Part shown: in pieces, positions 44,008 through 50,113 of the stretch
How the letters are laid out: every line of letters starts with the position of its first letter
Numbering within the stretch: position 1 is the stretch's first letter
Assembly (NCBI RefSeq): GCF_000143415.4
Contig: NW_003314291.1
Coordinates: 699,270-763,269 of the forward strand
Reading direction: 5' to 3'
DNA length: 64,000 nt
Source: Selaginella moellendorffii
Taxonomy: Eukaryota; Plantae; Lycopodiophyta
Position numbers and translations under genes: made by a program
Notes under the pieces: model-generated
What the model was told of the DNA's origin: nothing
Databases searched by the model: none
What the model saw: only the letters and a program-made list of their open reading frames with translations

Positions 44008-45315
44008 TCAAAGGGTGAATGGCATGTTGATATCGAAGAGATTCGCGGATGTAAGTTGTGGCTCCTGTATCCAGAGTTATAGATCGTAGGCTATACGAGT
44101 TTCTAGAAAAGAGATACGAACCTGCGTTAATCCACCAGCGACGCTTCCACCGGTTAAAAGCATTCCTATAAGAGTTGTCACACCGCCCCCGCCGATCCCT
44201 CCCGAGGAGGTATTCGCGTTCCGGATAGCCTGACGCATCCCATTCAAGACACTTCCATAAGTTTTATGCCCGTGCTCAATGGCCTGGATAAAGCAATAAG
44301 TCATAGCTCCAGTCGAAGTAACTTTCGACAAAGCCTGCAAGTAGAACAAGATTTAGCTGCGAGCCTACGAAACTTTGCGACAGAACATACAGAAGTATCG
44401 GCCGAAGTTTGCCCGTCGTCACAGCCACTGAATGAGTACGCGTCGCCGCCGCTGGTACCTTTCCAAGCCCCGGATCGAGGCCGATGATCTTCCCAAGCAA
44501 ACTGGCCATAGCTGCAAGAAACGAGAAGAAAAAAGAGGCCTTTTGAGAGACTTTTGCGTAAATCCCAAGTGAGGCATACCTGTTAAACTTGCAGAGGAAG
44601 GGAAGATCCAGCGCAGTCCCGCTGTGGCAAGCATCGATAATGCAGTGGAGCTTCACTCCACGAGGCAAAGGCCTGACCAAAGTCGCGTTGAGCTCGTTGT
44701 CCACGAGCATTCCTTGCGTCTCAAAGTCCACGGGACAAAGCGTCTCGTCATATCCGTCAACCTCTTCGCCCGTGTAGTCCCGCTGCTGCGATCCATGGCC
44801 CGAGTAGTGAAAGACGAGAGAATCTCCCGACTTGCATCCCTGGACGAGCCAAAACATCGCCATCCTCATGTTTTGCTTCGTGGGAAGTCGTAGAGGGTCT
44901 CTCTCTTCCTCTGGATCATCACGAAAAAACCAGCTTTCAGAAAATACAAAAGAGTCGAATCAAAGTTACCTGTGAGCATAAGGATCGAAGACTCCGGGAA
45001 CTGGAACTTGTTCATGAGCAAGAACTTCATACACTTGGCGTCATTGATGCAACCTTTGAGCTGGTAACGCGAGTACTTGTAGCTGATCCCGACGATGAGC
45101 GCTCGCTTGGATCCATGAGCGCTGGGAACACTCGGGGAGTACTGGAGGGGATTGGCAGGAGGAGCTCCATTCGAGTATGGCGATGGTGGGACGTTGCGAG
45201 GCTCGGCGATGTGAGTGACGGCATGGCAAAGCGCACAGCGAATGGCCTTCGCTCCAGCCGGGAGTTGCAAAGGCGTGCGGCAATTGCTACAATTGACGAG
45301 CATGTAGGACGCCAT
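44008..45315 (-). CDS. Type I metacaspase (AtMC1-like, LSD1-type zinc-finger prodomain)
   Basis: Prodomain CSNCRTPLQLPAGAKAIRCALC with a Pro-rich linker; LKGCINDAKCM; catalytic HYSGHG and DACHSG; last exon EPQLTSANLFDINMPFTL then stop. Confidence 0.95.
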
Positions 45316-45702
45316 CCAGCAAAAAATTCCTCCAAAAACACGATCGAGGAGCTAGAATAGAACCAAAGAAAAATCCTCGAAGAGCTAGAACCAAGACCCA
45401 AATTCACTGCTGCCCTGGAAGCGTTTCTCAACGATCTAAGTGACCCCTAAAGAACCCCAAATTCTCTCTGCCGCGATCGCACTGCCTCTAGGCTTACCTC
45501 GCCTTGATCCATCGCATCGCTCCCCACAACGAGCGCCACATAGGAGGACCTCTAAAGATCGCCTAGGGGTATCTCCCGACGCGCACAAATGGAAGGATCC
45601 ACGAATCTAAGCGCCTAGCTACACGAGAAACACCGTCCGATCTGACGCCCCGAATATTCCCAAAATATGAGAATCACCCAGATCCATGACCTAGATTCCC
45701 AC

Positions 45703-45985
45703 AGAAAGGTATATTATCAGGAATAATCTCTTCTGTACAAAAGGTATATTATTAGGAATAATCACGGTATGTTCATTTTTAGGGCTTTTCTTTTATTAGC
45801 GAAAAGTTACTATTGGTAACGTTTGACTGTGCGGCACATGTTTCCCAGGGAGTGGCCACAAACAGTCACGAGACCGGTCAAAGATTTTGGCCGGTCAATC
45901 CGGGCCGCGTCAAATCAAAACACTTAAAGCACGCGCCTGTAAGCTTCTCTCCATGCTTGCTCTGCGGCGGCGACGCTATAAAAAC
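45703..45985. promoter_or_regulatory. Divergent metacaspase/peptide promoter with a 24-bp direct repeat, W-boxes, a CGCG box and TATA
   Basis: aaaggtatattatYaggaataatc twice (about 45704 and 45739). TTGACT about 45823; GGTCAA about 45876 and 45893; acgcgc about 45931; ctataaaaa about 45977. Confidence 0.5.
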
Positions 45986-46110
45986 GAAAAATCTCAACGA
46001 TGCTGGAGCACTGCGAGACCCAATCAGTTAGAAGAGCGCCCGAGAAAGAGAATTCTATCCATTCCTTGATTCGATCGATCGATTTGGTGGTCAGAAGATA
46101 GAAGCTTTGG

Positions 46111-46689
46111 ATGAAAATGGCGCCAGGATCGATTGCCGGCTTGCTGCTCTTGATGGCGCTGGCTCTGCCCATGCCTGGGATGGAATGCTCGCGGTTGGAG
46201 CCTCGGAAGAACATCGAGGAGCGATCGCCATCGGGTCTTGAGCTCCGGAGCAAATTCGTAGCGCCCTCCGGCCCCAATCCGGGGGGGAATGCCGCGATCC
46301 TGGGAGGCAAGAAGGAGGTCTCTCGATCGACGCTCATTGGGGCCAAATTCGATGCTCCATCAGGCCCCAATCCAGGGGGGAATCGCTTCGTTCAAGGCGC
46401 CAAGCTCGAGATCGAGCTGGGCAGCAAGATGCCCAAGGGAAACTTCACCCCCAATCCAGGACCCAGCAAGGATCACAATGCGCAGACGATGGGCTCGTCG
46501 TCCAGAGTGGCGATTAGCAGCAAATTGCCCAAAGGCAGCACGCCGGGCTCGAGCCCCAGCCCGGGACACAACTCGGTGTCTAGAATGCTCAAAGTTCCAT
46601 CGCCGCCATCCTCCAAGATCGCCTGCACCGACGGCCTAGATTCCAGCTCCAGCTTGCTTGCAACGGCCCAGATCTTCTCCCATAATTAA
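46111..46689 (+). CDS. Multi-motif secreted peptide precursor (2 CLE-like plus 2 IDA-like motifs)
   Basis: Signal peptide, then SKFVAPSGPNPGGN (aa47-60), AKFDAPSGPNPGGN (aa78-91), SKMPKGNFTPNPGPSKDHN (aa105-123) and SKLPKGSTPGSSPSPGHN (aa137-154). Confidence 0.82.
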   Translation: MKMAPGSIAGLLLLMALALPMPGMECSRLEPRKNIEERSPSGLELRSKFVAPSGPNPGGNAAILGGKKEVSRSTLIGAKFDAPSGPNPGGNRFVQGAKLEIELGSKMPKGNFTPNPGPSKDHNAQTMGSSSRVAISSKLPKGSTPGSSPSPGHNSVSRMLKVPSPPSSKIACTDGLDSSSSLLATAQIFSHN

Positions 46690-47754
46690 AGGGGAAAAGG
46701 AGATCCAAAACAACATTTTTTGTAGGAGTATGATGATCTTGAAAACGTATGTACATTTCAGTAAATACGAAAAAGTGCATATATGTATAATTCTCAGAGT
46801 TAATTTCGAGATCTAGCTGGTAGAGCTGAGTTCTTGAGATTGTTCTTACTTCTCTGGCTCTAGATTCATCGAAGCTTTAGAAATCTCTCCACAAAGACGT
46901 GATGAAATCAACGCTCTTGGGAAAATTTGCAAGAACATTGTGAATGGATTTTCAACGAGAAGCAGACTCTCGCAAAAACTGTAGTTTGTTCATTGCGAGT
47001 TTCGTTTTGTCTGAGAGATTCTAATGTCAAGAGCTTGCAGTAGAAACCAAGGACAAGGATCATGCTCCTGCAAAAATGGTTCTTTATCAGTGATGCGCAG
47101 GCAAAACGCAAGATCATATAACTTTTTCGCTAACCAAAGGAAGAACAAAGTAATAGCGAAGGATCCAGTCGCGGGGACTACGAGAATACAAAGTCTATAC
47201 GTTTTTGCGGTTTTAAACGCTTACGAAAGCGAAGTTTCCACCACAGGGACACGACACCAAGATCGTGTCAAGGAATCGATGGAAAACTGGGAAGAAAGTG
47301 AACTTCCTAGAACTGATCGATTGTTTAGTTTCTTGTCTACACCCAGATTGGAACGACTGATAACTGGAAGTCATGGAGTGGCTCCACGAGAGAAAAGTAT
47401 AAAGAAGAAAGAACGCGCCAATTTCTCGTTGCTTGATTCAAGTACTACGGTAGGTTTGTGTAGTTTTTCTTCGTTTCACGATTAGTATATTGGGAGATCG
47501 AGGCGCAGACAAACTTGAAGTTGTAGATTGATTCGAAAGACACAGGAAATCCCGAGCAGGACGTAGAAAAGATGGAAGCATCGAAGAAGAGCTCGAGTGG
47601 GATGAGAAATACGAACGCAAGAACAAAGGGGGAACATGGTTGAAAGCATTTGGACAAACTTCGAGGAAATCAAACCGAAGGTTTTATTTCTTCGCCGAGG
47701 ATATGATACAATCTTAATAAAATGAATCAATATATGTATAAGAAATGATATTGA

Positions 47755-49214
47755 TCACATCTCGTTGATCGCCTGGGGGTGGTAGTAGCACATCTCCCTC
47801 CACACATACTCCCGCAAGTTACTGCTCGTGTCGACCATTTGATCCTCCATGACATCCGGAGGGATGATATTGTCCGGACGAAACTGGTAGACATCTCCAG
47901 CGTGATTGTCGTGAACCAGATTGAAGTACGGATGATCCAGCGCCTCCGACACGGTGATCCGCTCCTTTGGATCGAAGGCAAGCATCCTCTCGATGAGCTG
48001 CAACGCCTGCGGATTCGCGTGTGGATAGAGGCGAGACAATGGAACTCTCGGCGTTGGCGGCAAGGAGCGGATGTAACTTCGAGCTTTGTGATTGCTGATG
48101 AACCCGAGCTGGCTCTCCTTGGGCGATCCGATCACGTCGATGATGAGCTTGAGCTGGTTGATGTAGTTCTTGCCTGGGAAGATCGGCTTTCTCCCCAGGA
48201 GCTCGGCGAAGATGCATCCCACGGACCAGATGTCAATGGCGCTGGTGTAGTCCTCGCACGAGAGGAGGAGTTCCGGAGCGCGGTACCAGCGAGTGACGAC
48301 GTACTCGGTCATGAACTGGCCTTTCTCTCGCCCGGTTCTCGCCAGGCCGAAGTCGGCGATCTTGAGATCGCAGTTTGCGTTGAGGAGTAAGTTGCCGGGC
48401 TTTAAGTCGCGGTGGAGAACGTTGGCCGAGTGGATGTACTTGAGACCACGAAGCAGCTGGAAGACGAAGAACACACACGTCAATGAAGAAAAAACAAATT
48501 TTTGCGACGGTAGAAACTAGACGGACTGGGAACAGAGGATTTTCATGAGAAAAAAGCATGATTTTGATGGCTGAAAATCGAAGGACAGCATAGAACTAAG
48601 TAGACGAGATCGCGGAGGAGCTGGGACACCGACTAAAACTTAAGAAAAACTGATTTTCCGACGTATGGCAGAACCAAAGGAGCCATGGATCAAACAACTT
48701 AGAGAACAAAACAAGACGTAGGAAATAGAACAAGAAAAAAACCGAGTTGAAAACGAAGGACTATAACCAGGCACAGCTAAACGAGGAGTACCTGATAGAT
48801 AAAGAACTGGTAGTGCTCGTCCGTGAGGGGCTGCGAGGAGCGGATGATCTGGTGCAAATCCGTGTCCATGAGCTCGTAAACCAGGTAGACATCGTTGAAA
48901 GTGTATCTCCCGACGGGTTTCATGATATCCAGCAGCCCCACCACGTTTTCGTGCTGCAAGTACCGCAGCAGTCGCATCTCCCGCAAAGTTCTCAGCGCGT
49001 CGATGGAGTTCTCGAACGCATTCCCAATCTTCTTTATGGCAACCTTGTCCCCGGTCTCCAGATTATCGGCCGAGCACACCACTCCATACGCTCCCTTCCC
49101 CAGCGGACGAATTGGAACATACTTGGTGTCGATCTCAAACAAGCTGTGCCACAGCATGTAGTAGTGCTTGTCTGGAGGGCAGTAGCCATTTGGAGGATCC
49201 ATCTTGGTTGCCAT
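47755..49214 (-). CDS. Mitogen-activated protein kinase, TEY type, group C (MPK1/2/7/14-like)
   Basis: Group C-type N-terminus [29 protein letters not shown]; [10 protein letters not shown]; [17 protein letters not shown]. Single intron at 48457-48791. Confidence 0.95.
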
Positions 49215-50113
49215 AGCTGTGAGAGTGAGAGACCTCTACCTCTCGTTCGTCCGTTCTCTCGAACAGAGAGAAAGAGAGCGAGAGATCTAGCTGAAGCTAC
49301 TGCTGCTGCTGCTACAATTTCCCCCAAGTTTCTTTCCTCTCCCAATTCGAGCTCTGGCTGAGATCTGATACTACTCGGTTTACCTCTAGTTTGCTCGCCC
49401 ACGGCACTCCTGGAAACAAAAAAGGATAAATAGAGATGGAAAGAAAACGTAGTGACCGTGTCAAGAATACTGCGCAGCTAAACACGAACGCTGGAAAGGA
49501 CTGTGGGCGAGGGGATTAGTTTTCACACTTTTCTATCGATTTTAATTGCGTTTGTTGGAAAGACTTACTCGCACTCGTCGTCTGGAGACGCACGAGCATT
49601 TTGTACAGGGGCGCCGAGGGCCACAAACAAAAACACGCTAATAGAGAGAGAGAGAGAGAGAGAGTCGTGGCTATGGCGATGGCGATGAAATGGGGCCGCC
49701 AGGGATGGCGAAGTTGGAACCAGTAAGCGCAACACAACAACAACGAAGAAAAACCATCTCCATCGCGTTCTTGGGTTTACCTCTCAGGTCAGAGGAGGAA
49801 ACCAACAAGGAAAGTGGAACGAAGAAAAAAAATAACTTGGCCAAAGTCAAAAAAGCAGTATCACAATCTTACTCTTGGAGCGAGCATCTTGAGGTCGCGA
49901 CTAGAGAAAACGAAAGAACGAAAACTTTGAACAAGAAAAAGAGAATGTTTGAGAAAAAGAGTTGATCTTTCAGTGTATACTTAGCTAGCTAGTGGATCTG
50001 ATCGAAGCCCACAACGAAAGCGCTACAGAAAAAATTAGTAAAAAGAGAAGACCATTGAAATTTCAAGAGGAGAATGCGTCGTGAACAAACACGGAGGTCA
50101 CACACAAGATCCA

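Follow-up and report, generated by a model that had tools for sequence, protein, structure and literature searches.

A shared origin of the proline-rich peptide hormones of plants (CLE, IDA, PIP and CEP) has so far been argued from the likeness of isolated 12-residue motifs. A common ancestor of CLE and IDA has already been proposed, on the strength of isolated transitional motifs, by Zhang et al. 2020 and in the legend to Fig. 8 of Furumizu et al. 2021 (PMC8462819). The subject of this report is a gene at positions 46111 to 46689 (+ strand) of a 64,000-nucleotide stretch of the Selaginella moellendorffii genome (contig NW_003314291.1), referred to below as 'the window'. Its predicted product carries two CLE-like modules ending in Gly-Gly-Asn ('GGN modules') followed by two IDA-like modules. 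We found no paper on a conserved precursor family with GGN-type, IDA-like and PIP-like modules in this order.

The IDA/IDL precursors (AtIDA, SmIDA1-3, MpIDA1-2) resemble the Selaginella gene: both have a signal peptide, and in both an (L/M)PKG context stands equally far from a 12-residue unit of the form ..P.PS..HN. They are about 70 to 100 residues long with one C-terminal motif, whereas the Selaginella gene has two internal IDA-like modules behind two modules of another type. IDA was earlier stated to be missing from Selaginella (Vie et al. 2015); Furumizu et al. 2021 report SmIDA1-3 there, found by tBLASTn. Some of these three may be modules or genes of the present window.

The GGN modules share a PSGPNP core, a terminal xGN and a 12-residue unit with CLE peptides of the H type or TDIF-like group (CLE41, AtCLE46, MpCLE1 and Sm412987), and multi-CLE precursors likewise repeat 12-residue units in one secreted protein. 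Unlike CLEs, the GGN modules have Phe or Asp at position 1, Ala at position 3 and Gly-Gly at positions 10 and 11, and are co-encoded with IDA-like or PIP-like modules. Sm412987 (HSVPSGPNPVGN) is a canonical H-type CLE encoded by a separate gene of the Selaginella genome. A closer parallel in layout is Sm416983/Sm420331 in the supplement of Zhang et al. 2020, where it is catalogued as CLE. It has the same order (PPTGPNPGGN and PPTGPSPGGN first, then repeated, IDA-like PPAGPSPVHN) and differs in ending with true CLE modules (HLVPAGPNPLHN, HSVPEGPDPVGN) and in having no LPKG contexts. The gene described here is not in that catalogue, which does list other Selaginella genes. A Picea homologue was machine-listed there on account of its first module, as a CLE candidate of Group 4, with its PIP-like modules uncommented.

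According to the original prediction, which was made from the sequence alone, precursors with several peptides normally repeat one family. Arabidopsis CLE18 provides a precedent for a mixed precursor: a CLE motif and, at its C-terminus, a CLEL/RGF motif are encoded together (Vie et al. 2015, who cite Meng et al. 2012). It differs from the present gene in the families that it joins (CLE and CLEL) and in having one copy of each. We know of no report of a conserved multi-module order across plant divisions for CLE18. Likeness to the PIP/PIPL peptides, which have an SGPS core and end in GxGH (two motifs occur in some of their precursors), is found in gymnosperm homologues; no GxGH motif occurs in the Selaginella protein or anywhere else in the window.

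Outside plants, peptide 16D10 of the nematode Meloidogyne (GKKPSGPNPGGNN) shares nine consecutive residues, PSGPNPGGN, with modules 1 and 2 and with a single-module gene of the window (9/9 identical). It differs in its gene, which encodes a signal peptide plus 13 residues. 16D10 has been reported to bind SCARECROW-like transcription factors; reviews list its receptor as unknown and call its likeness to CLE 'somewhat similar'. Apart from 16D10 no published PSGPNPGGN peptide was found, and no plant paper was found with PNPGGN in its searchable text. The family described here holds the only plant sequences that we found with the exact core of 16D10, whose target in plants is still given as unknown. 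We take the identity as a lead, which would not in itself be evidence of mimicry or common descent. The usual hosts of root-knot nematodes are angiosperms, where the protein and profile searches brought up no member of the plant family. That the motif stems from contamination or from a nematode was rejected: the gene lies on a 1.9-Mb plant contig, has spliced plant neighbours and is found in both haplotypes.

The precursor gene and its modules

The coding sequence (46111 to 46689, +, stop codon included) is an intronless open reading frame (ORF) running from ATG to TAA and encodes a prepropeptide of 192 residues. Its N-terminus (about residues 1 to 26; 46111 to 46188, +) resembles a signal peptide. 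A hydrophobic core at residues 7 to 21 (Kyte-Doolittle nine-residue means up to 2.7) lies behind a short Lys-containing end, and an AlphaFold single-sequence model places a helix at residues 8 to 16, in keeping with the secretion signal of the CLE family. The observation behind the original prediction, a signal peptide (here a signal-peptide-like start) followed by four motifs, was confirmed. We infer that the prepropeptide is secreted, on the basis of this hydropathy and of the SignalP and 'Extracellular' values tabulated for the Picea homologue (Zhang et al. 2020).

The product is rich in Ser (30 residues), Pro (22) and Gly (22). In the AlphaFold model (mean predicted local distance difference test score 43.7) there are three short helices, of which the one at residues 8 to 16 comes first, and the remainder is disordered; no folded domain was predicted, in line with a propeptide. 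A Pfam scan gave zero matches using a Pfam copy that evidently lacked the PF27884 model, since homologues with a precomputed match to that model gave no IDL5 match with it either. Pfam matches on homologues (Swm2 and TX13_rpt among them) were spurious low-complexity matches and were discarded. After the fourth module there is a C-terminal tail of 38 residues (46573 to 46686, +) with a degenerate KVPSPPSS stretch, a single conserved Cys (46624 to 46626) and an SHN end.

In public annotation the gene is an uncharacterized protein assigned to no peptide family, and the possibility that it was already described under one such family can be set aside to that extent. The cluster of proteins at least 90% identical to the product holds XP_002987163.2 (uncharacterized LOC9657438) and EFJ11739.1 (SELMODRAFT_426056), both from S. 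moellendorffii and both encoded on the other-haplotype scaffold GL377644.1. The identifiers LOC9657438 and SELMODRAFT_426056 are named in no paper of the searchable literature, and a literature search for PSGPSKDHN gave nothing.

Colinear RNA-assembly contigs define a transcribed region at 45964 to 46796 (+), an unspliced mRNA of about 0.8 kb. The contigs come from four runs representing four studies: X1 (45964-46779), X2 (45972-46728), X3 (46023-46637 and 46635-46796) and X7 (46019-46744). All are unspliced and colinear with the genome. We regard these runs as transcript assemblies because the neighbouring genes appear spliced in them. In all four runs the upstream neighbour (44121-45443) is joined over four gaps of 56 to 68 nucleotides, whose ends read GT..AG on the minus strand, and the downstream neighbour is joined over 48456-48792 in two runs (X3 and X7). 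Unspliced colinear contigs in such assemblies therefore confirm the intronless mRNA expected by the original prediction. Since these are assembled contigs, exact transcript ends and expression levels cannot be derived from them. The interval 46839-47673 is free of contigs in the runs covering the gene. A TATA-like CTATAAAAAC is found at 45976-45985, about 35 to 45 nucleotides upstream of the X3 and X7 contig starts (46019-46023). The X1 and X2 contigs begin upstream of it (at 45964 and 45972).

The modules were compared as C-terminally anchored 12-mers with peptides quoted in papers. Module 1 (SKFVAPSGPNPGGN; 46249 to 46290, +) and module 2 (AKFDAPSGPNPGGN; 46342 to 46383, +) are of GGN type, while module 3 (SKMPKGNFTPNPGPSKDHN; 46423 to 46479, +) and module 4 (SKLPKGSTPGSSPSPGHN; 46519 to 46572, +) are IDA-like. 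Module starts are spaced by 27 to 32 codons. The best matches of modules 1 and 2 are Meloidogyne 16D10 (9/12), the H-type CLEs AtCLE46 and Sm412987 (8/12) and TDIF (7/12), with weaker matches to R-type CLEs (6/12; CLV3, 5/12) and AtIDA (4/12). Module 3 matches GmIDA1a at 7/12, AtIDA at 6/12 and CLEs at 3-4/12. Module 4 comes closest to IDA-like PVPP-type and Sphagnum motifs (7/12), ahead of AtIDA (6/12) and CLEs (3-5/12). The assignment of these two modules to the IDA/IDL type is therefore supported, their best 12-mer matches being IDA-type peptides. PIP and CEP references share 0 to 3 of the 12 residues with all modules (1 to 3 for the C-terminal 12-mer of CEP1).

Modules 1 and 2 read F(V/D)APSGPNPGGN and so contain the CLE core P-S/T-G-P-N/D-P and the terminal Asn/His. 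Two of their features had been singled out as unlike CLE. Phe at position 1 does break the CLE rule; the GGN end is not alien to CLEs. Position 11 is His in R-type CLEs, whereas H-type CLEs have xSN or xGN ends, with Gly at position 11 in AtCLE46, MpCLE1 and Sm412987. Outside the mixed-precursor family, Gly-Gly at positions 10 and 11 was seen in 16D10 alone.

Modules 3 (FTPNPGPSKDHN) and 4 (STPGSSPSPGHN) have the central Pro, the Pro-Ser at positions 7 and 8 and the terminal HN of an IDA 12-mer (PIPPSAPSKRHN type). Each also has an IDA-type subtilase context, MPKG in module 3 and LPKG in module 4, where the cut would fall between Lys and Gly. Counted from the residue that precedes PKG through the last Asn, the span is 17 residues in module 3, 16 in module 4 and 17 in AtIDA (LPKGVPIPPSAPSKRHN). 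Module 4 is then followed by Ser, as at the C-terminal cut of AtIDA. AtIDA itself is cleaved by SBT4.12/4.13/5.2 between LPK and G and between HN and S. With 192 residues, four internal modules and the 38-residue tail, the protein departs from the short single-motif precursor typical of IDA/IDL. It also has no CEP 15-mer of the FRPTxPGxSPGxGH type. A CEP reading of modules 3 and 4 (FTPNPGPS resembling FRPTNPGNS) was dropped, because it requires a gap and GxGH is missing.

Modules 1 and 2 form a direct repeat of 40 nucleotides, 85% identical and spaced by 93 nucleotides. In their APSGPNPGGN cores four of ten codons differ, all of them synonymously. A third copy of the core, at 30832-30861 (-), has seven synonymous and one non-synonymous codon differences from each of the two. 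The gene is intact in both haplotypes, which are 97.6% identical over the 13 kb around it. The coding sequence of the other allele has three base differences, none in the modules: one causes P20S in the signal peptide, another V94A within a linker, and the third is synonymous. Given the synonymous-only core differences and the recurrence of the motifs in homologues of five other genera, the modules are not, on these comparisons, products of chance, and both types are under purifying selection.

A 12-nucleotide stretch coding for PNPG, CCCCAATCCAGG, is identical at 46365-46376 (module 2) and 46449-46460 (module 3), but its register with respect to the terminal Asn differs between the two modules. 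This shared stretch may mean that module 3 combines a core of the GGN type with an end of the IDA type.

Three single-module genes sit 14 to 16 kb upstream of the polyprotein gene and mirror its modules. One (30829 to 31086, -) is a small signal-peptide gene of GGN type, ending in SKFFDDPPPSGPNPGGN with PPPSGPNPGGN directly before the stop codon. It aligns with polyprotein residues 2 to 91, including the signal peptide (score 80 versus 28 ± 5 for shuffles). As a query against a collection of 5.8 billion proteins it gave no match, itself included, a result that is uninformative on angiosperms; since there was no self-match, the gene is probably unannotated. A second gene (32164 to 32403, +) is IDA-like and ends in KLPKNTPTAPSGPSKDHN followed by the stop codon. 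It aligns with polyprotein residues 86 to 123 (score 64 versus 30 ± 5.5) and its module matches GmIDA1a at 9/12. The third (29823 to 30041, -) carries RLPKNIQVPPSSPSPRGN and was classed as IDA-like by 12-mer matching (AtIDA, 7/12); its similarity to the polyprotein is inside the shuffle range. The stop codons directly after the Asn of GGN and of DHN would mark this Asn as the last residue of the mature peptide, which it also is in ligands of the CLE and IDA families.

All seven modules, from the polyprotein and the single genes, share one frame: [S/A/Q/N][K/R]-hydrophobic-(PKxxx)-xPPSGP[S/N]P..N. This frame and the shared CCCCAATCCAGG fit module duplication within a precursor plus fusion or fission of single- and multi-module genes, in either direction. 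For the reference genome, one unannotated peptide gene (30829-31086) and one uncharacterized gene are flagged by these results.

Beside the single-module genes, an intronless ORF of 429 residues (28386-29675, +) carries LRRNT_2 and many leucine-rich repeats (LRR) and is without a kinase domain. It is predicted to be a secreted LRR-only protein. As it ends about 150 bp from the first single-module peptide gene, it is a candidate ligand-binding partner encoded beside the peptide genes.

A mixed precursor family in lycophytes, ferns and gymnosperms

Homologues were recovered by protein searches, both word-indexed and exhaustive, and then by a profile search, and were identified from protein-cluster members and from the supplement of Zhang et al. 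2020. Profile E-values of family members range from 1e-12 to 1e-62. A phmmer search of a representative library gave five matches, two of which (P0008 and P0009) were dropped as unrelated repeat proteins.

Among lycophytes, Diphasiastrum complanatum KAJ7538441.1 (P0006; 834 residues) has one GSGPSPGGN followed by at least 12 LP(K/x)G-prefixed modules of the type ...GPNP(G/V)HN. These alternate between SLPKGPTTPPGPNPVHN and LLPxGVNPPSGPNPGHN, that is, an IDA-type prefix on a CLE-type core. The fern Adiantum nelumboides has two proteins (MCO5612106.1 and a paralogue; 473 and 503 residues) with at least 10 to 11 modules of the VSGPNPGGN type, and the 473-residue one continues with ELPRASHVPLSGPSTTHS. 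A Pteridium aquilinum transcript (313 residues) has several GGN modules and then ELPRAPVPPSGPSPSHN, and an unplaced Logan contig (230 residues) has two followed by MLPRATPVPPSGPSKDHN.

In the gymnosperms PIP-like modules are present as well. Ginkgo Gb_15970 (316 residues) has three GGN modules, FPKGSVPPSGPSHKGY and then three SGPSxG(V/A)G(H/N) modules. Its paralogues Gb_15969, Gb_15962 and Gb_21003 (250 to 252 residues) have FPKGSVPPSGPSHKGY followed by one to three PIP-like modules; in Gb_15969 and Gb_21003, the two paralogues inspected, no intact GGN module was found. Proteins near-identical to Picea abies MA_10356943g0010 (P0002; 284 residues) have three copies of VAPSGPNPGGN, then three modules of the KLPS..PGVGH type, and His is at position 1 in only one of the three GGN copies. 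Clear PIP-like modules of the KLPSGPSxGVGH type are found in P0002, P0003, P0035 and P0036 (Picea-like and Ginkgo proteins), and the gymnosperm homologues have two to four modules of this type behind their GGN modules. Judged by gene numbering, Ginkgo Gb_15962, Gb_15969 and Gb_15970 resemble a tandem array.

In every member having both, the GGN-type modules are N-terminal to the IDA-like or PIP-like ones. The downstream modules are IDA-like in lycophytes and ferns, IDA-like and PIP-like in Ginkgo and PIP-like in Picea. On these sequences the mixed order, GGN first, is conserved across lycophytes, ferns and gymnosperms, and the recurrence of the motifs in orthologs, on which the original prediction had been made to depend, extends to five genera besides Selaginella. 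The tail is shared too. A motif hydrophobic-hydrophobic-[G/A]-C, usually with an acidic residue or Gln within two residues, is common to Selaginella, Diphasiastrum, Adiantum, Pteridium and Ginkgo (the Picea-like proteins excepted), which argues for homology of the whole precursor and not for convergence of motifs.

Mean identity between species is 8.5/12 for GGN modules and 6.8/12 for IDA-like modules, while a GGN and an IDA-like module inside one protein share a mean of only 4.25/12. The higher identity between species than within a protein therefore argues that both types are older than the lycophyte-euphyllophyte split and have remained separate ever since. This split corresponds to more than 400 million years of vascular-plant divergence.

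Precomputed matches to PF27884 (IDL5) exist on four homologues (P0005, P0036, P0037 and P0039). The name IDL5 was taken from Protein Atlas output, whose other leads scored below 0.9. No bryophyte or angiosperm homologue surfaced in the protein and profile searches, a weak negative given how limited these were.

An expressed precursor family thus physically joins CLE-like to IDA-like modules in a fixed order in lycophytes and ferns. Its gymnosperm members add PIP-like modules and so move PIP-like motifs back to the gymnosperms. The emergence of PIP/PIPL has been placed in seed plants (Vie et al. 2015) and in angiosperms (Furumizu et al. 2021).

Proposed processing and alternative explanations

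We consider it probable that this expressed, intronless gene encodes a secreted and unstructured prepropeptide of an unnamed, conserved family of mixed multi-peptide precursors, so far from lycophytes, ferns and gymnosperms. The gene would belong with the precursors of small peptides that are modified post-translationally and would be of value for the question of CLE, IDA and PIP origins. At the level of sequence and transcript this interpretation is supported; taken as a whole, the original prediction is partly supported.

By analogy with the maturation of CLE and IDA, the signal peptide would take the precursor into the secretory pathway (endoplasmic reticulum), where its prolines would be hydroxylated. 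Subtilase-type enzymes would cut after the Lys of the shared module start ([S/A]-K-hydrophobic, or PKG between Lys and Gly) and after the terminal Asn. The PKG and HN-Ser contexts agree with the mapped AtIDA subtilase sites. At least four peptides of 12 to 14 residues with a free C-terminal Asn would be released and could serve as ligands of subfamily-XI LRR receptor kinases, the IDA-like ones for receptors of the HAE/HSL clade and the GGN ones for an HSL- or TDR-like receptor. Selaginella has 14 subfamily-XI receptors, three of them in the HSL clade. The single-module copies beside the polyprotein offer material for binding tests on these few receptors, for module trees and for a model in which peptide families arise by intragenic duplication and by fission.

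A further-reaching proposal, which we hold to be rather unlikely as a whole, is that the GGN peptide (xxAPSGPNPGGN) is a distinct, hitherto undescribed ligand class of non-flowering vascular plants, whose co-encoding with IDA-like modules (in gymnosperms, PIP-like ones) would go back beyond the lycophyte-euphyllophyte split. Duplication within the precursor would have given rise to the CLE-like, IDA and PIP types, which would later have left it as genes with a single motif; the three mirror genes 14 to 16 kb upstream suggest this. The GGN peptide would also be the long-missing plant counterpart of 16D10.

Several points weigh against the mixed-precursor interpretation. The GGN modules depart from the CLE rule not only in Phe (not Arg/His) at position 1 but also in Ala (not Val/Ile) at position 3. 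Residue P4 is Lys in the Selaginella modules, whereas Tyr at P4 matters for the cleavage of AtIDA by SBT4.13. The PF27884 match of the four homologues is not recorded for the Selaginella protein itself. Lastly, the labelling of runs X1-X7 as RNA is an automatic guess, which is why spliced contigs of the neighbouring genes were relied on here.

Further objections belong to a different reading, which is possible but which we do not favour. Here the lycophyte modules would be variants of a single ligand intermediate between IDA and CLE and acting on the same HSL-type receptor(s), so that the gene is an ordinary multi-copy precursor and the 'two classes' reflect angiosperm-centred labelling. The one frame that aligns all modules and the three single-module genes speaks for this, as do the Diphasiastrum modules, whose LPKG prefix is joined to a PSGPNPGHN core one residue off GGN. 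The gene at 29823-30041 ends in PRGN and is thus IDA-like without His, modules 2 and 3 share their PNPG-coding stretch, and descent of CLE and IDA from one ancestor has already been put forward in print. Against a single family, the two types are distinct in at least six genera; the 8.5/12 identity across species versus 4.25/12 within a protein argues for separate constraints and hence for separate binding requirements. The canonical H-type CLE Sm412987 also exists separately in the genome. The claim of two hormone classes in one precursor is supported by the distinct 12-mer matches and the conserved mixed layout, and has to be softened to the extent that the classes may blur in lycophytes, as the common frame and the Diphasiastrum hybrids indicate.

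It is improbable that one module type alone is bioactive and the other serves as a spacer or pro-domain (for folding, sorting or protease recruitment). Such a division is conceivable in principle and nothing points to it directly, whereas purifying selection acts on both types and each also stands alone in the window, in a gene that stops at the terminal Asn. If the product were instead a hydroxyproline-rich structural glycoprotein of the cell wall (extensin-like or arabinogalactan-protein-like) that is never cut into peptides, this would account for the Ser/Pro/Gly-rich composition and the disorder. We think this very unlikely, since the protein is without SPPPP or repeated AP/SP/TP glycomodules (KVPSPPSS is its one SPP stretch), conservation is limited to the Asn-terminated 12-residue units with PKG-type cleavage contexts, and the single-module paralogues stop exactly at that Asn. 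That the gene is an artefact of annotation, or is decaying and functionless, is scarcely credible: only the missing functional annotation speaks for this, whereas the gene is transcribed in four studies, intact in both haplotypes and conserved in lycophytes, ferns and gymnosperms.

Neighbouring genes

The upstream neighbour (44121-45443, -; also L001:7895-9203) encodes a type-I metacaspase with zf-LSD1 and Peptidase_C14 domains and has four introns of 56 to 68 nucleotides. Some plant peptide precursors are processed by metacaspases. The adjacency of a metacaspase gene to a peptide precursor gene may be a coincidence.

The downstream neighbour (47746-49240, -) encodes a protein kinase of 374 residues. 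A 335-nucleotide stretch of this gene (48456-48792) is removed in X3 and X7, and in X1 and X2 there are separate contigs inside it (48575-48777). These contigs suggest intron retention or an alternative form of the kinase transcript.

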